Source of the DNA: Monocercomonoides exilis PA203
Taxonomy: Eukaryota; Protista; Preaxostyla
DNA: 64,000 nt
NCBI GenBank assembly: GCA_001643675.2
Contig: LSRY02000009.1
Location: 310,001-374,000, forward strand
Reading direction: 5' to 3'
The notes beneath the pieces are model-generated. The model ran no database searches. It worked only from the letters and a program-made list of their open reading frames with translations, and was not told the DNA's origin. The translations under genes were made by a program, and so were the position numbers. Every line of letters begins with the position of its first letter. Position 1 is the stretch's first letter. This document shows positions 34,204 through 45,443 of the stretch, piece after piece.

Positions 34204-36216
34204 ATGAATTCACGAAAAGGTGCACTTTTTGTATTTTGAATTTCTTGATTTTATTGCTCTTTTGTTTTTTCGCTTTTCTATATTAAAGTTTACGGAATTG
34301 ACTTCGGTAACGAAAAAACTTTGTTATTTGCTCCGTTATCAACATATTTTGGAACTGAAAATCTCCCGACTTCAATACGCGATTTTATTTCGTGTTCTTT
34401 AAATACTGAGGATACTCGCTACATTCCTTCAAGGATTCTTCTTGATAATCAAGAAAGAATTATTGGATTAGATTCTCAACGAAACAATGCAGTTACAAAT
34501 TTCAAGCAACTACTTGGAGTTCTGAAAGACGACAAAAAAAATCTTGAATGCTTTGATCTCAAGAAGATATATCAATTAGAACCAACAGTAAAAGTACCTT
34601 ATGGCCGTGACGGTGAATTCCTCAAGTTTACTGCTGAACAGATTGCAGGTTTGTCATGATTGATGTTATCCTTTCGTTAATACACAATGCTTTTACTTAA
34701 GGAATGTTTTTTCGAAAGGTTATACAAAGCAGCAATCATCCCGGAGACATTCCAACTGCTTTGACTACAATTCCAAAGTTTGAACTTATAAAAAATGTCA
34801 AAAATTTAAGCACATTTTCTAATCTAGATTTCAAGGCTTATTACATCCTCTTGAACGAGTATCCGCTGTTCTTGCAGTTCCAACTTTTTTTGCACAATCA
34901 CAACGAAATTCAATGCTGACAGCCACGTCAATTGCCGGAATTGACGTTCTTCGTCTCTTGAATGATACGACAGCTTGTTTGAGCATTTAATTTTTATGCT
35001 ATATGCAATTAATTGATCTTGACTATTATTCTTTCGATATTATTTTATTTTATTTTATTTTATTTTAAATAAACGTTCAAATCAATAATTCATAAATTGC
35101 GTTTTTCTATTTTGAACTCTTAATAACTTTTCCCCTTTCCCCTTTTCCCTTTTCCCTTTTTCCTTTTCCCTTTTTCCTTTTTTCTATGTTTTATGCTCTT
35201 CGTTCTTTGCTAATTGCTATTTGTGTCTTTTCCAAGCTGCTGTGTGCTACACTGTGACGCGCCTACCCCTAACAGCGGGGCTTCGGAGTCCGTATTACTT
35301 CTCCATCGTCGACTTCGGCTCCATCGGCCTGCAAATCTCTCTCTTCCGCCTTCTCCGCCTGACACACTCAGCCTCGCTGACATGCATCGCACACTCGTTT
35401 TCGCTGGAGCTGTCGGGAAATGCCATCGACAGCCTCGTTTTTGAGCATTTTCTGCCGCAGGCGACGGCGCTGCTGGAGAAGTACTGGGCAGAGACAGAGG
35501 GAAGTAGCAGTGGAAGTGGCAGTTGCAATGAGGAAGGAGAGGAGAAAGAGAAAGAGAAAGAACAAGCGAAGAAAGAGAAGCACGAGAGGGAAACGAGCCG
35601 GATGCACGAGCGGCTGCGGAAGGCGGCGAAGAGTCTGAAGATAACTCTGTCATCAGCGCCAGTAGCTAGCCAGAAAGCAGAGCTTGTGCCAGGCGAAGTG
35701 GATTTCACGCTGCAGATGACGAGGGAGGAGTTTGAGAAGATGATCAGTCCGCTGGTGGAGAAGGCAGTGAGGGACACAGTCGAGGATGCGGTGCAGATGG
35801 CGTTGGAGAGTGTTGCAGAGAAGGAGGAAGGAAGGGAGAAGGAGAAGGAGAAAGAGAAAGAGAATAAAGAAGAAGAGAAGGGAAAAGAAGAAGGAAAAGA
35901 AGAAGGAAATAACAGCAAAGTGAGTCTGTTTGATAAGCTGCCATTGGAATCTGTGCAGACTGTGGGTGGATCATCACGTATTCCTCTTTTTCAGACTGTG
36001 CTCGAAAGAGCATTCAACGACGGTGTGGTTGAGATGGAAAAATTATCAAAAATTTTATTGTGAAGCTGTTGATTCAATTACAAATAATTGCATTTTTTTT
36101 TCAAAGTTTTATTCGCTTTTTTTGTAAATTTTCTGTTCTTATTTAATTTGAATTTTATATAATTTTGTCTTTTTATGTATTAACATATTTTCTTTCTCTT
36201 TCTCTTTCTCTTTCTT

Positions 36217-36287
<71 letters not shown>

Positions 36288-39200
36288 CAGTTCTCCACCC
36301 ACCATCTCCTCTATCTGCCTCGCACAATCTGAACTCTGATGAGTCTGTTGCATGGGGCTGTGCATGGATGGCCAGCCAAATCATCTGCGAAAGAGCTGAG
36401 AAGCACAGCCAGAAGACAAAAGAACCAGCACCATTGAAGCAGAATGGAATAAGAGTGTGTTAAATAGTAACATGCTATTTTGTGTTTTCTTCTTCGTCGT
36501 CTTCTTCTTCTTTTTGAATGGTTTTTTCTTTTATTGTTTCCATTTGTTATTCATTGAATGTACAAATAAATAGATCGTTCTTTCTTATTTTTCTAATTTT
36601 TCTTTTGATTTCATTTTGTTATTTATTTTTTTATTTTCAGATCCAACTGACTGAGCTTCTTCCCCGAGATATCTATTTGTATCAGACCGAAGAGATAGGC
36701 CAGCAAACACACAGAACACCCTCCATCTTCACTTCTGCCTGTGCCGATGCTATTTCTTCTTCTTCTTCTTCTTCTTCTTCTTCTTCCTCCTCCTCCTCCT
36801 CTTCTTCTTCTTCCTCTTTCTGCTCTTCTCCGTGTGTCGTTGGCTTCAAACGAGGCAGTCCTATTCCATCTCATCACACAGCTCGATTCAGCAGAAGAGA
36901 AAGAGCAGAAAAGGAGTTGAGTGAAAAATTGAACTGTGGAACACACAAAGAAGAAGAAGAAGAAGGAGAAGAAGAGGAAAAAGATAAGTCAATTGAGAAA
37001 GAGACAGAAAGAAAAGAGGGAGAAGAAGAAAATGCAAGTTCATCTTCGAGTGCCAGTTCCAGTTCAGACGATGATTTGGAGGTGATTCAGCTGCCTTCAG
37101 CAAAGAAAGTGCCTCTTCACATCTCCATCCACGCACACTACGAATGCCCTCACTTCGAAGAGGAGAAGAAAATATTGTCTTCTTCTTCTTCTTCTTCTTC
37201 GCAGTCCCTTCACCAAGTAGCCCTTCCTTCCCCTTCGATGTCTCCATTCTCTTCCTTTAGAACGCCTCAGCTGGTCAAATCTGTTTCAATGGAAAGCACA
37301 ACATGCACAGACATGGCTGGAGTTGTCGTTGACGTCGATGAAAATGGCATCTTCTCCTTCCAATCTCCATTTGTGCTGGAAAACATTGGATCTGTCAAAA
37401 CAGAGGAGGAAAGGGGGAATGCAAAGAAAGAAGCGTCTTCTTCATCTTCATCATCATCATCTTCTTCTTCTTCTTCGAAGGAGAACAACGAAGATTCCGT
37501 TGTGGATGACAGGTCGTCCATCAGAAGATCCCTGCCGATGACAATTGCCTTCACCACAAAGCCAACGCGTGTGAATTTGGAGTGGCTGAAAGACGAGGAA
37601 AAACGAATGTCCAAACAAGATGAGCAAACAAAGGAGAACGAAAGATGGCGGAATGAGCTGGAGACCTACTGCTATTCAGAGATGAATGAGTGCGACGCGA
37701 TGCGGATGGAAGGGGTGATGAGTGCGAGAGACGAGGAGGAGTGGAAGGAGAAGCTCAACCAGACACTCGAGTGGATTAGCAACCCTGCTGCCATCTCCAC
37801 GTCGGCTTATCCCTTTTCGGCTTATCTTTCACCTTCTCCTGCTCCTTCTCCTTCCCCTTCTCTTTCTCCTAATCAGTCATCATCATCTGCTTCTTCTTCC
37901 TCTTCCTCTGATTCTCAATCTTCTTCTTCTTCTTCTTCTTCTTCTTCTTCTTCTTCTTCTTCTCCCTCTCATCTAATCCGCCAGCCCGCTGTGTTGTACC
38001 AGCAACGTATGAAAGAGCTTGGAGATTGGATTCAACCAGTCAAAGACCGACGCAAAGAAAGGGCAGACCTGCTGCACGAATGCTCCGCGTTGGAAGAGGC
38101 AGCCGAAAGTGCGAGGAAGATGAAGAACAGAGTGAGGGTGCTCTTTGAGAAGGAGCAGCCACAGGCTGTCGAAGCGTTTTTGAGTCAGATTGCGAAGGCA
38201 GAGGAGATGTTGAACAGAGTGAAAGGGATGCTGGAGTCTATAAACAGAAGCACAGGGAGCGAATTGGCAGCAGGTGGAGGAGGAAAGAACGAGGGGGATT
38301 CTTATGCTTCTTCTTCTTCTTCTTCTTCTTCTTCTTCTATTGATTCACCATTATCTTCCTCCTCTTCCTCTTCCTCTTCTCCTCTGCACCATTCTGATGC
38401 CACACTCATTGCTGGCGAAGACTCATCCGATATCTCTTTGACGTCTGCTGTGTCTTTCCTTCCAATTTCAGCAGCAGAAGTGAATGAGATGGCGACTGCA
38501 GTGAGGAAGACTGTGCGGGTGATGGGGGAAAAGATCAAAGAGAAAGAGGCAGAGCGGAAAGAGAAAGAAGAGAAGGAAGAGAAGGAGAGGCAGCTGAGGC
38601 TGAAGCAGAAGCAGAAGGAGGAAGAGGAAGAGCAGGAGCGGCTGAGGAGGCAGAGGCTGAGGGAAAAACAGCAGCAGAGCAGACGACGTTGGGTGTGTGC
38701 CATTTTGTGAGGGAATGAGAAAGAAAAAGAGAAAAAGAGAAAATGAAAGAGAAAATGATAGAGAAAAAGAGAATGAGAGAAAGAGAGAAAGAGAGAGAAA
38801 AAGATAAAATGAATCAGAAAATGATGATGTGAGTGAGTGAGTGAGTGAGTGAGGAAGGCAGAGGTGGGTGGCCATTCACTTCTGCAAGTGAGGGGGAGGA
38901 GTGGTTTTGAAGGTGTATTTCTCTTTGTCTTTCCTTCTTTTTGTTTGGCATGGTTTTTATTTTTATTTGATTTGAACGATTTGTGAAAATTAATGAATTT
39001 TGCTCATTTTTTTCATATTTTCTATTTCAAATTCATTCAACTTTTGAATTTTTTATTTTTTTATTTTTTTATTTTTTTATTTTTTCTTGTAAATTGTATC
39101 AAATCAATTCACTTATCTTCCTCGTCTTTTTTCAGGGGCCCTACGGCTATGAAGGTGACTACGACGATGACGAAGAATACAACAACAACGAAGCAGCAGA

Positions 39201-40163
39201 AGACAATGATGATGATGATGATGATGATGAAGAAGAGGAAGACGAAGACAACCAGCGTTATGATATCTTTGGAAGACCAATTGGAGGGTGGGGAATGAAT
39301 CCGTTTGGCTTCGGAGGAAGTTATGGAAGGCAGCCAAGGAAAAAGAAGCAGATGAAGAAAAGAGGAAGCGATTTGGAAGAGGCGAGGAGGAAGGAGATGG
39401 AGAAAGAGAGGGAGGCGGAGAGGAGGAAGGAGGAAGAGGCAGAGAGAGAAAGAGAGAAGGAAAGACAGAGGCAGAGGGAGTTGGAGCAGGAGAGAGAAAG
39501 AGAAAGAGAAAGAGAGATGCAAAGGAGAAGAGAAGAGGCCGAGAAAGCAGCGAGGCAGCAGGCATTGTATGAACAACAACAGCAGCAACAGCAAGAGGCA
39601 GTCTTGACACCGCATGTGGAAGTGGAATATGACGATGACTCGATTGTGTACTATGTGGAGCTGCCGGGTGTGAACAAGGAGGATGTGCAGCTGTCGACAA
39701 CAGACGACTCGCTGCTGGTGGAGGCCGTCAGAAAGAGGAGGAGACAGACTGCGTCTATTCTGTCATTCGATGGTGGATTCAATACAACGGTGTGTTTAAT
39801 ATTGTGTTATGTGTTAAATATTGTGATGATGATGATGATGATGAATATTGTGTTAGACGTTGTGGAATTTATATTTGAGTGGGAATTTTTATTTATCTAT
39901 ATTTCCCTGTGACATTTGATTATTTCTTTATTTTCTTTGTTATCATCGTTAATAATTCTCTTTTATTGTTTCGCTGACTATGTATTATTGTTATTTTATT
40001 TTTGATATTTTAGGTTCCTGCTGCAATTTATCGCAGAAACATCCAAATTCCACGTGATGCTGATGTTTCTGGTGTATCTGCCGAATTCACCAATGGCACA
40101 CTTAAAATTACAATCCCCCGTATTGTGGTTGCTCCTTCTTCTCGAAGGATTAGCATTTGGTAA
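34204..40163 (+). CDS. Divergent Hsp110/Hsp70-family chaperone, apparently fused to a C-terminal Hsp20/alpha-crystallin domain (9 exons)
   Basis: Exons 34204-34219, 34289-34648, 34702-34777, 34828-34976, 35237-36022, 36291-36454, 36641-38692, 39136-39789, 40014-40163, all GT-AG and phase-compatible. Hsp70/110 motifs: VYGIDFGN, LAVPTFF..QR....IAGIDVLRLLNDTTA, VDFG, TREEFEKM, VGGSSRIP, NSDESVAWGCA, RNELETYCY. Hsp20 motifs: VELPGVNKEDVQL, YRRNIQIP, AEFTNGTLKITIPR, RRISI. Both domain calls are solid; their joining is inferred. Confidence 0.8.
36190..36284. repeat. (TC)n / pyrimidine microsatellite in intron, abutting the 3' splice site
   Basis: Seen directly, just before the cattcag acceptor at 36290. 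Confidence 0.9.
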
Positions 40164-40485: not shown

Positions 40486-41160
40486 TTAAATTGCTTTTGG
40501 CAGAGGAATTGTTGGAACAGAAGGCTGAGTTGGTATCATGTGCTGAGCCGGAACTGGGTTTGCGGGATAACCCTGAGCAGGAAGAGCATAAACAGGTTGC
40601 GCAGTTGGAGGTTGGATATATGTTGGCTGTCCGAACACCATCTGTCCCTGTGCAGGTGGAATGAAGCCTGGTTGAACGAACTGCGGCTGGACGGGATATG
40701 CAACAATTTGTGGCTCGGTTGTTGACAAAAATTGAGCTTTTTGTCTAACTGCATCAATGATTTCTATGTTAAGTTGTTCGACCATATCGTTCAGAAGGCA
40801 GCAATCGATGCAAGTTCCTATTCCACAAAGGCCACCAGTCAAGCAGTAAATTATGCCCATTGTAACATCTCCGAGATAAACACGCTGCATTCCATGAAAC
40901 CCGCAAAAGCATCCCAACCAAGCTAACCAAGCAGTATAAGACGAAAATTGTCCATCGCCCCAAGCAGGAATTCCTAATCTTAAAGTAGATTTAAGTTGTG
41001 GTGACCTTTACAAGAATTGCATAAAAAAACATTAATCTTCAATTATTGTCATAAAGCTAAAGAAACAAAACCATTGAATCCCTTCATAAGTTCTTGGGTC
41101 GTACATTGAGATTTGTTGTGGCTGAGTTACAGCGACTTGTGGAACTGCTGTTGTTTGCAT
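40486..41160 (-). CDS. TM2-domain membrane protein with Pro/Gln-rich tail
   Basis: Exons 41160-41072 and 41005-40486 (intron 41006..41071). AWLAWLGCFCGFHGMQRVYLGDVTMGIIYCLTGGLCGIGTCID matches the TM2 pattern (G.HRFYLG...G..Y..T.G..GIG...D). Confidence 0.85.
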
Positions 41161-41303: not shown

Positions 41304-44300
41304 ATGGATTTGCGTGTTGCTCTTTACGCAAAAAAAATCTCATTTCCACCTCGCCAAGCGTCAACAATATCCCAGCCATTCGTTTCAATCGATAATTCAG
41401 GGAAAAATATATTAATTGTTGATTTATCAAAGCGACAAGTTTACACATATTCAACAGAAACAAATGAATATCATCAACTTTTCCCAGAGCCAGAGCTTAT
41501 TTTTGAAGATGAGGAGATTGTATATGTGCAATATTTGACATTTCAAACTGTATATTCTCCAATGTCAATCATTGAAAAGCAACCTTCAAAAGCAAAACTG
41601 GCAAAAAGCAAAGAAGTTTTATATGACTATGCATCAATGTGCAAACCTTATTTTTTTGATTGTGCGCTTGTTGCAGTTTCTAATGGAGATCTTTTATTTA
41701 TTCATCTTCCAACTCGTCGAATAATTCTTAAAACTGTTTTTTATCCAGCTCCTCTGCTGCACATCAATGTTTCTGCACCAAATGTTTCTCCTGCAACATT
41801 AACATTTATCTACTCTGGGGAAATTGCATGCGCGGTGTCAATTACTTCACTTGCAAAAGCTCTAACAACTGAAATTATGGCAAAACAAACGCTTTATCAA
41901 TTCAATAGAGATACCTCCCTTGATTCGCATCCAAGGAAGTGGGATAAAAAATGCCCTGGCTATTCTGAAAAAATTCCTATTTCATTACCAGTTACTACTG
42001 CTCCAATAAAACATGCAGTTTGGAGCTTTACCTCAATATCAACTTTGAATGATTGTGTAAGTATTGGAGGAGTATGTCACAGCACGACAAAAGGGAAGAA
42101 GAAGGAAGAAAGCGGATACTTTGTCAGATATTCAAATGCCTTTGGCGCATTAATTTTTGGTGATGAAAAAGATGAGGCCTCTCTAATGCCAGGCGCACAG
42201 CAATCATCATCATCAACAACATCATCTTTAGTATCAGCAGACTCATCCTCTCAATCCGCAAAGCAGCCACAGGTGACATATCCTGTTGTGCTGCGTCTGC
42301 TAGCGCTTGGGTCAACCCCCTTCATCTCTCAATACACTGCCCCAACACAACCTCCTCCCCCTTCTGCCATCGCTGCTGTCGCCAGCGCCATTTCGTCTGT
42401 TGTCAAAAGCACATTTCGAATGGGCAGGTTTTTGTTTGGAGGAGGAGGAGGTGGTGGAGGAGGAAGCAATGATTCTAACAGCAGCAAAGGATCCAAAAGC
42501 CCTTCTGCCTCTTCTCCTGCACAACCAGGAAAGAATGACTCAAACACAAACGCCTCTTCCTCAGCTTCTGGTTCAACTGGTGCATCTGGTGCATCTTCCG
42601 CCCCTCAGCTTCGCAGTCCCTTTACCCTCCACTACTCACACCTCGCTCTGCGAGACAAGCTTCGTGTCGGGAAGCGAGTGGCAGCAGCGCCTTCGTCTTC
42701 TTCCTCGTCAGCGTCTTCCTTTGTGGCAGTGAGTGACTCATTGGGCAGAGTGATGGTGGTGGAGGCAGACAGCGGGGTGTGTGTGCACATCTTCAAGGGA
42801 GTGAGGAATGCACAGGTGGCGTGGCTGAGGGAGTGGATCGACTTTGGAGAAGGAGAGAAGAAGAAGAAGAAGAGGGGGAAGGAAGTGAAGGTGGAAGAAA
42901 ATGGAAAGAAAGAGAATGATGAGAAAGAGAAAGAGAAGGAGAAGGAGGCAGAAGAAGTGAATGAAATGCAGACAACAGCGTGGATGAGAAACAGAGAGCT
43001 GTTTGAGAGAAGAAGACTGCAGCTGCTGCGGCAGAGAAGAGGCATCTCATCAAAACCACACAAACACCACAAAAACAGACAGAAAAGAGAAGAAATTCAT
43101 TCAATGCAGAATGACAAGGAAATGTTAAATGAAAAGGATTCCAATGAACAGACAAGTTCTTCTTTGAATGCGTTGTCGTCTTCGGATGAAGGGAAAACTG
43201 CATCTTCAACACAGACATATGTCAATCCATCGCTCATTCAGAAATCTCAATCTCTTTTATCACCAGATACAATTTCTTCTTCGTCAAAATCTTCTTCTTC
43301 TTCTTCCTCTTCTTCTTCTCCTTCCTTCTCCTTCACCCCCTTCTCCACCTCTGCCACCTCTTCTACCTTCCATCCACCCCCCTTCCCATCCACACACAAC
43401 ATGCTTCCTCTCCTCTTCCTTGTCATCTACACACCCCACCGCAACCTCATCGAAGTCTTTCTTTTCCCTCACTTCTCCCGCATAGGCGCAATGGTCGTTC
43501 CAAATGGCATTCTCCTCTCCCCTCTCTCAAACAGCGGGGCTGCGGTGTCGTTTCAGACAGAGGAGGAAGAAAAGGAAGAAGAAGAGAAAGAGGAAGAAGA
43601 AAGGGAAGAGGAAGAGGAAAATGAGGAAGGGGAAGGGGAAGGAAGAGGAAGAGGAAGAGGAAGAGGAAGAGGAAGAGGAAAAGGAAGAGGAAGAGGAAAT
43701 GTATTTGATGAGAAAGAAAAGAGTCATGATAGTCAAGAAAGAGAAAGAGAAAAGGAGAATGAGAAAGAGAAAGATAAGAATAAAAAGAAAGAGAAAGCGA
43801 ATAATGTGAAAAGTGATAAGCTCAATCCATCAAAAGGAAGCATGCCACAAACAGAGCTTCTTTCTGCGAGGCGTCTTTCTCGTTCGCCCAGCCCTTCCTT
43901 CTCTTCTCTCTCTTCCATCTCATCCAGAAGTGCTTCTCTTTCTCCTCCTCCTCCTCCTTCATCTTCTTCCTCTTCCTCTTCTTCCACTAATTCTTCTTCT
44001 TCTTCTTCTCGTCCTCACTCAAACGCATTCACAGCCCTTGCCGTGACAGCTGCTGTCCCTCCTCCTCCTCTTCCTCTTTCTGCTTCTTTCTCTTCTCTTT
44101 CTTCTTTCTCATCTTCTTTCACAAACAACACATTCAATAGAAGCAACTTAAATAGCTCAAACACCTCTTCTTTCATTCTGAACCAATCGCGCAGTCTTCT
44201 TTCCTTCTCCTTTTTGTGTTCTCCTTCGCTTTCTCCTTCTCCCCTCGTCAGAACTCTTTCCAATGCCCCCCTCTTCTTCTCTGCTTCTGCCTCTGCCTCT

Positions 44301-44814
44301 GCTGCTTCTCCTGCCAAATACAATGGAAAGAAGAATACTGTTATTGATTCTAATTCTTCTTCTTCTTCTTCTTCTTCTCCATCTCCATCTCAAACACAAT
44401 TTGTTGCTCCTACACCTCTTTCTCCTTCTTTTTCATCATCATCATCTTCTTCTTCATTATCATTATCTTCTTCTTCTTCTTCTTCTCGTTTATCTCCTTC
44501 TCTTTCCACTTCACCCTCATTTCTTCCCACTCCCTCCCCCTCTTCGTCTCCAACCCCTCCTCCTCTCTTCTCTGCTCCTCTTCTTTGGTCATCATCATCA
44601 TCTTCTTCTTCTTCTTCCTCTTCCTCTTTCCACCCAAAATGCACCCTCGCCAATCTCTCTTCTGTTCTCCATGGCGATTCTTTCTCTCCTTCTCTCTCTT
44701 CTCCTTCCATCCCTTCCACACACCCCGTCCTCTTCCTCTCCAGCAACCGCTTAGTCCACCTGCACATTATCGCTCTCTCTAAACAGATGAGAGAGAAGAA
44801 GAAGAAAGCAACAG

Positions 44815-44845
<31 letters not shown>

Positions 44846-45443
44846 TTCTTCTTCTTCTTCAATGGCGATGGAGATGAATGCAAAGGGAGCTTATTCGCTG
44901 TTTGCTACACCTGCTGGAAGTTCTGTTGATCAGTCACATTCTTCTTCTTCTCCTTCTTCTCCTTCTTCTTCTCCTCTTCCATCCACAAACACAAATGCCC
45001 CATTCGAAGTGCATGGCGATTTAGAAGAGATTTTCTTACACAGAAACAGAGGAATGCCAACTTCTTTGTTTTTGCCTTCATTTTTGCCGGCAAATGGCCA
45101 TTTTAATAAAAATAATTGTGGTATTGATCATTTGAATCATAATCAGCCAATTGAGAGTAATTTTCCTTCACATCAGCTGTTTCACTCACACGCCACTCAG
45201 CCTTACTCTCCTCCTCTCTCTCATTCACCCTCAAATGCAATGGATGTCTTGTCTTCTTCTTCATCTTCATCTCTTTCTACATCTCCATCTTCTCTTTCTT
45301 CTCTTTCTCTTTCTTCTTCTCCTTCAGTAACTGTCTCATCTTCCCCCAAGCTGAGCACGATGACTGCCAATTCTCTCTTTGTTGCTGCTTTCAGCACAAG
45401 CAATCTGCTCTCAAAGATGTCGACTTATCCGTTCAAGCAATAA
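41304..45443 (+). CDS. RAB3GAP2: Rab3 GTPase-activating protein non-catalytic subunit (N-terminal domain)-like protein with large low-complexity insertions
   Basis: LRDKLRVGKRVAAAP...AVSDSLGRVMVVE....VHIFKGVRNAQVAW and LFLVIYTPHRNLIEVF...RIGA match the RAB3GAP2_N motifs (TDxLGRV, WKGYRDA, LVIYAPRRGxLEVW). Confidence 0.8.

Follow-up and report, generated by a model that had tools for sequence, protein, structure and literature searches.

An Hsp110-small heat-shock protein fusion transcribed in Monocercomonoides exilis and retained in other Preaxostyla

A gene of the gut protist Monocercomonoides exilis PA203 encodes an Hsp110-type protein and a small heat-shock protein (sHsp) in a single chain, and the fusion is confirmed at the transcript level. 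The gene lies at 34204-40163 on the plus strand of a 64,000-nucleotide (nt) stretch of contig LSRY02000009.1; this stretch is called the window below, and positions refer to it unless another locus is named. Its nine exons, separated by GT-AG introns, join into 4407 nt and encode 1468 amino acids (aa) with no internal stops. The product begins with a divergent Hsp110-type nucleotide-binding domain (NBD), a substrate-binding domain (SBD) and a helical bundle; a linker of charged helices, which includes an aromatic patch, then leads to an alpha-crystallin domain (ACD) and a terminal I-x-I motif. A single-chain Hsp110-sHsp protein had been proposed in a first-pass annotation of the DNA, and this proposal is upheld both by RNA over the junction and by the occurrence of orthologues in a further three genera of Preaxostyla.

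RNA evidence, orthologues and paralogues

The RNA data were assembled contigs rather than reads, taken from four metatranscriptome runs (X1-X4) of one study. Such contigs omit rare forms and give no transcript starts or ends; none covers the entire gene, and the RNA support covers the last two introns, introns 1-6 resting on the frame model. Each of the four runs yielded one contig of 429-431 nt that aligned on 38380-38693. In X2 and X3 this contig has a 91-letter loose end starting with window 39137-39166, a 30-mer that is unique in the window, and the segments 38356-38692 and 39136-39227 together measure exactly 429 nt, matching the contig size. For X1 and X4 the assignment goes by size and coordinates, which equal those in X2 and X3. 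The contigs of all four runs cross the proposed splice from 38692 to 39136 exactly, and the last intron is likewise removed in each run. No contig in the four runs falls on 38865-39042, the unmasked middle of the fusion intron; the adjoining 39043-39256 was masked as a repeat. The pattern that the first-pass annotation had set against its own proposal, i.e. polyadenylation after the TGA at 38710 together with a separate Hsp20 transcript and no junction, is not matched by the contigs.

The search for the same architecture in other oxymonads and metamonads, recommended at the outset, found it in three more Preaxostyla genera, represented by Blattamonas nauphoetae, Paratrimastix pyriformis and Streblomastix strix. 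A HMMER search with exon 5 against 1.84 billion representatives returned 27 proteins, three of them long. Of these three, KAK2962467.1 (B. nauphoetae, 1137 aa) and KAJ4457616.1 (P. pyriformis, 1232 aa) each combine HSP70 and HSP20 in one annotated protein, and in a second Blattamonas protein, KAK2950735.1, an ACD-like end aligns below Pfam detection. In Blattamonas one exon of 830 codons (residues 202-1031) extends from the NBD as far as the first strand of the ACD; the intron after it measures 34 nt. In Streblomastix, which reads TAA and TAG as Gln, one stop-free frame of 1077 codons links the start of the SBD to the I-x-I motif and reads through a small intron that stays in frame within the ACD. 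Neither species has an intron between the Hsp110 part and the start of the ACD. The Streblomastix orthologue (locus L032, 806-6235) is annotated as two genes of 496 and 780 aa; it looks like one. The Paratrimastix gene is intron-rich, and the fusion there rests on annotation.

Other searches gave little. A protein similarity search with the Paratrimastix ACD matched itself only, and one with the Blattamonas protein returned itself and ordinary Hsp70-family members only, a weak blank because a known orthologue was missed as well. The ESM Atlas, searched by features and by fold, yielded plain Hsp70/Hsp110 clusters only, and the metagenome contigs with fragments of the family end short of the ACD region. 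Independent Hsp70-ACD fusions may exist in other lineages.

In the M. exilis genome (82.3 Mb, 101 contigs) the free sHsps number two and the canonical Hsp70/BiP loci seven; there are also a single ordinary cytosolic Hsp110, three large Hsp70s of the endoplasmic reticulum (ER) type and one Hsp104/ClpB-like gene. The fusion is an extra copy alongside the ordinary Hsp110 and the free sHsps, and belongs to a lineage-wide family with two paralogues in this genome. The second paralogue lies on the minus strand of contig C18 at about 156600-164450 (locus L031) and encodes a protein of roughly 2200 aa, in which the low-complexity inserts are very long. An uninterrupted frame of 1722 codons leads from its SBD into a weak, decayed ACD, whose HSP20 score of 19.7 bits falls short of the 20.8 cut-off. 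M. exilis and Blattamonas thus each have one well-kept and one decayed fusion copy. Among the other chaperone loci, the Hsp104/ClpB-like gene (L036, 943-3528) adds an Hsp100 disaggregase to the set. The three ER-type genes (L022, L023 and L024) are very long and divergent, with frames of 1251, 1585 and 1838 codons and xxEL ends, and are probably an expanded Grp170 set. Beside one of the free sHsps there is a gene (L001, 304-1197) that, judged by eye, resembles a secreted GH25-type lysozyme.

Gene model and domain assignment

The features of the gene are collected in Table 1. Pfam and database searches of the M. exilis gene were run per exon, whereas the spliced model was used for translation, alignment, tree building and BLAST against the retrieved loci. 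The splice signals are as claimed earlier: GTGTGT donors at 36455, 38693 and 39790, a TTTTCAG acceptor ending at 39135 and a phase-0 join. In the alignment with Blattamonas, introns 1-4 coincide in position or nearly so. Among the 69 GTGTGY sites in the window, the one at the fusion intron is the sole CaaX-like case, giving VCAIL-stop (38693-38712) when read through.

Table 1. Exons and selected introns of the fusion gene
Feature	Positions	Strand	Evidence
Exon 1: start codon, MNSRK	34204-34219	+	frame-consistent model; intron place matches Blattamonas and Streblomastix
Exon 2: NBD lobe I, phosphate-1 motif GIDFGNE, K71 equivalent kept	34289-34648	+	alignment
Exon 3: NBD	34702-34777	+	model; matches paralogue and orthologues
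Exon 4: NBD, NDTTA motif	34828-34976	+	Pfam HSP70, E 9e-11, above cut-off
Exon 5: NBD lobe II, DFGS, acidic inserts	35237-36022	+	Pfam HSP70, E 3e-7, above cut-off
Exon 6: NBD end (LNSDESVAWGC)	36291-36454	+	alignment
Exon 7: IQLTE linker, SBD-beta, SBD-alpha, helical bundle, extra helices	36641-38692	+	Pfam HSP70, weak; alignment
Fusion intron: 443 nt, GT-AG, phase 0	38693-39135	+	spliced out in RNA contigs, four runs
Exon 8: acidic stretch, aromatic/Gly patch, E/K/R helix, first half of ACD	39136-39789	+	ArsA_HSP20, E 5e-5; RNA
Last intron: 224 nt, within ACD	39790-40013	+	joint seen in each of the four RNA runs
Exon 9: second half of ACD, terminal I-x-I (RISIW), stop	40014-40163	+	Pfam HSP20, E 9e-8; RNA; alignment

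Judged by its sequence, the Hsp110 part is a member of the Hsp110/Grp170 group. An Hsp70-fold NBD, SBD-beta and SBD-alpha follow one another in order, as indicated by Pfam, alignment and an AlphaFold2 model of the Blattamonas protein searched with Foldseek. Exon 2 gives a weak HSP70 match and is 46% identical to the C18 paralogue, and exon 5 matches both Hsp70 and Sse1 in the PDB. The canonical Hsp70 motifs E175, GGGT and DLLLL are absent as a set: the catalytic position has D (NDTTA) in place of E175, as in Sse1, DFGS stands where Hsp70 has DLGGGT, and the linker is the charged IQLTE rather than DLLLL. The NDTTA motif had been taken as a sign of divergence; this does not hold, since D or E-T is usual at that place in Hsp110 (NDVTA in Sse1). 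Identity to other members of the Hsp70 superfamily is about 20-24%. In a FastTree phylogeny of the NBD (375 columns, no rows for Ssz1/HSPA14 or HSPA13) the NBDs of the six fusion copies group together as one clade (support 1.000), which is nested in Hsp110/Grp170 (support 1.000), apart from DnaK, Hsp70 and BiP; its placement with Hsp110 or with Grp170 has a support of 0.52.

No fusion copy has a signal peptide or an xDEL end, and the M. exilis fusion has no ER-retention signal, whereas the three ER-type genes of M. exilis end in xxEL. An ER Grp170 with a signal peptide is not supported, because splicing of the first intron yields the start MNSRKVYGID, which lacks a hydrophobic leader. The best solved relative is Sse1, by sequence for the Paratrimastix protein and by fold for the Blattamonas model, whose top five Foldseek matches are all Sse1. 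This model, built from eight aligned sequences, has a mean predicted local distance difference test score (pLDDT) of 67 and a predicted template-modelling score of 0.46; the NBD, the helical bundle, an 80-residue helix and the ACD are predicted with confidence.

The acidic/aromatic segment, the ACD and the terminal I-x-I motif that had been described after 39136 are borne out by Pfam and alignment, and the Pfam scan placed HSP70 and HSP20 matches in the one gene, as had been anticipated. The ACD belongs to the HSP20 family (PF00011 passes its cut-off on exon 9, as it does on the whole orthologues), and its best solved relatives are true sHsps, Hsp16 and wheat Hsp16.9. The aromatic/Gly patch (about 39259-39340) resembles an sHsp N-terminal domain. 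The I-x-I motif reads ISI in M. exilis and INI, IAI and IAI in the orthologues; together with the patch it is kept in four well-preserved copies, one from each of the four genera, with a comparable spacing to the C-terminus (229-261 aa). Two E/K/R-rich helices, at the end of exon 7 (about 38525-38692; this 3' end of the exon is covered by RNA contigs) and in exon 8 (about 39364-39567), precede the ACD, which begins at about 39604. Of the "charged coiled coil" reported in the first-pass annotation the charged helix stands but the coiled coil is doubtful: with about 70% E/K/R and less than 10% large hydrophobic residues, the segment is closer to single alpha-helices. The protein carries a true sHsp module, yet at 1468 aa it is not the small stand-alone subunit that defines an sHsp; it is neither an sHsp nor a canonical Hsp70.

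Around the 3' end of the gene some further observations were made. In run X1 a contig of depth 3.8 lies at 39855-40020, within the last intron; a retained intron, a precursor, antisense read-through or DNA are candidates for its origin. A TM2-domain gene is encoded at 40486-40917 on the minus strand, convergent with the fusion gene, and the contigs of X2-X4 extend 600-800 nt beyond 40300 toward it, so that the 3' ends of the two genes probably overlap. Further on, at 41304-45443, a frame of 1379 codons with long poly-Ser inserts matches RAB3GAP2_N (E 3e-26).

Proposed function and alternative readings

sHsps and Hsp110 target the same aggregates, normally in the form of two distinct proteins; the way in which clients bound to sHsps reach Hsp70 is still under study. 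We consider it about an even chance (roughly 0.5) that the fusion is, as predicted from sequence, an Hsp70 exchange factor that the ACD anchors to oligomers of sHsps or to aggregates. A duplicate Hsp110 gene would have gained a whole sHsp at its C-terminus, comprising an aromatic N-terminal-like patch, the ACD and the I-x-I motif, and its product would be one cytosolic protein of a Preaxostyla family. Through these three elements the protein would form oligomers, either of its own chains or mixed with the two free sHsps, and would co-aggregate with misfolded proteins, as sHsps do (PMC8384840). The Hsp110 module, carried on long charged helices, would act as a nucleotide-exchange factor for Hsp70 at the aggregate surface, where it would load and cycle Hsp70 and speed the hand-over to Hsp70/J-protein/Hsp104; Hsp110 promotes Hsp70 loading onto aggregates (PMC11479587). 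The ordinary Hsp110 would then serve bulk exchange and the fusion copy would be targeted to aggregates. Potential partners, i.e. free sHsps, Hsp70s and an Hsp104-like gene, are encoded in the genome. A more tentative extension is a self-assembling disaggregation scaffold, in which an sHsp-type oligomer would show many Hsp110 heads on helical arms.

Hsp110 is an exchange factor of Hsp70, and in yeast the contacts of Sse1 N572/E575 and A280/N281 with Hsp70 are required for disaggregation, Hsp70 binding itself depending on N572/E575 (PMC5440654). The N572/E575 equivalents (RNELE at 37649 in M. exilis) are kept in five of the six fusion copies, A280/N281 is intact only in Paratrimastix, the I-x-I motif and the patch are kept, and beta6 is altered in the oxymonads; on this balance an sHsp-anchored exchange factor is favoured over the other readings. 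Several observations weigh against it. The N/E bundle motif also occurs in plain Hsp70s and therefore does not discriminate. The A280/N281 contact is not kept in the M. exilis fusion, and of T365/N367 only N367 is kept; the ordinary M. exilis Hsp110 likewise lacks N281. The SBD-beta is heavily interrupted, by poly-Ser and acidic inserts in exon 7, and has a pLDDT below 50 in the Blattamonas model. The beta6 dimer motif of free sHsps, R-x-Y-G-x-F-x-R, is recognisable in Paratrimastix and has been swapped for an aromatic loop in the oxymonad copies. Finally, the decayed ACDs of the second paralogues show that the domain is dispensable in some copies.

The incomplete Sse1 contacts would also fit a real fusion that has lost exchange activity and become a large holdase or sequestrase, its Hsp110 part serving as a nucleotide-gated scaffold or second client site. 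The long NBD branch in the tree points the same way, as do G/A/Q changes in the adenosine motif and a G-to-S change in the GG motif of several copies, the availability of an ordinary Hsp110 for exchange and the holdase C-terminal extensions of Hsp110s (PMC8063735). We regard this as rather unlikely, given the confidently predicted NBD fold and the retention of the phosphate-1 D and G, the K71 equivalent and the N/E bundle motif. Less probable still is an ACD that serves for oligomerisation or localisation only, docking on a structure or on I-x-I partners with no grip on clients. ACD-like domains are interaction modules in other multidomain proteins (PMC6197667), and the altered beta6 loop and the ACD decay in the second paralogues are in line with such a role; the patch and the I-x-I motif, typical of client-binding sHsps, are however conserved in four genera.

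That the fused transcript is real while the working products are mostly separate, through an internal-start sHsp, linker proteolysis or an intron-retained CaaX-like Hsp110, appears improbable. An ATG near 39297 is a candidate internal start, the 3' contig of X1 has a depth of 30 against 18 for the junction contig, contigs omit minor forms and starts, part of the region is repeat-masked, and read-through of intron 7 gives a basic, CaaX-like end. The junction contig is unbranched, however, the middle of the intron is devoid of contigs, and the depth of the 3' contig is probably inflated, since in X2-X4 it runs on toward the convergent TM2 gene. The V-C of the CaaX-like end simply follows from the GTGTGT donor, and the form is not conserved, because Blattamonas and Streblomastix lack the fusion intron; a conserved prenylated short form is unlikely on this ground and because no RNA contig shows retention. 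Two adjacent genes wrongly joined would be in keeping with the in-frame stop 15 nt past the donor and with the fusion intron being the longest of the gene. This artefact is rejected, with a probability close to nil, by the RNA junction, the Blattamonas exon, the Streblomastix frame and the uninterrupted frame of the C18 paralogue.

Comparison with known chaperones and significance

The fusion resembles Hsp110 (yeast Sse1; human HSPH1/HSPA4) in its non-Hsp70 catalytic motifs, charged interdomain linker, SBD-beta insertions and extended helical bundle. It differs by a C-terminal sHsp module of roughly 270 aa, a partly altered Hsp70 contact and its status as an extra paralogue. With non-metazoan sHsps (Hsp16, wheat Hsp16.9, yeast Hsp26) it shares the ACD, the terminal I-x-I and the upstream aromatic patch, but its ACD is tethered to a 1200-aa partner, its beta6 motif is altered, and the oxymonad fusions have a charged helix of 70-80 aa between patch and ACD. 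In its working the fusion may be most like BAG3 or Btn2, although it is related to neither. The BAG domain is a nucleotide-exchange domain. BAG3 links its Hsp70-binding BAG domain to sHsps (PMC6297355); it binds separate sHsps via IPV motifs and is unrelated in sequence, whereas the fusion has an in-chain sHsp and an exchange factor of the Hsp110 type. The yeast sequestrases Btn2 and Hsp42 combine an alpha-crystallin-like domain with extra domains that recruit Hsp70-Hsp104 (PMC6813348), Btn2 doing so through the J-protein Sis1, without an Hsp70-family domain. Metazoan Hsp110s also have an added anti-aggregation region after SBD-alpha (PMC8063735), but this extension is disordered and lacks an ACD.

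No description of an Hsp110-sHsp fusion was found in the searched literature, which included few subscription journals, and the genome papers checked are silent on it; the fusion is visible in the public Pfam annotation of two database proteins. It is a transcribed, lineage-conserved chaperone architecture, built from two known families and apparently undescribed. Annotation stands to be corrected accordingly: the orthologues carry the name "Hsp70 protein 14/15", as if they were ordinary, and in Streblomastix the gene appears as two. As a natural fusion it offers an experimental handle, with tethered and untethered modules to be compared, and a hint for the design of disaggregases. If the scaffold prediction is true, one particle would be hard-wired both to capture misfolded proteins and to load Hsp70 locally, and it would be a natural test case for the handover of clients from sHsp to Hsp70. 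The retention of the fusion in three oxymonad genera and in Paratrimastix suggests that these organisms benefit from bringing an exchange factor to sHsp assemblies.

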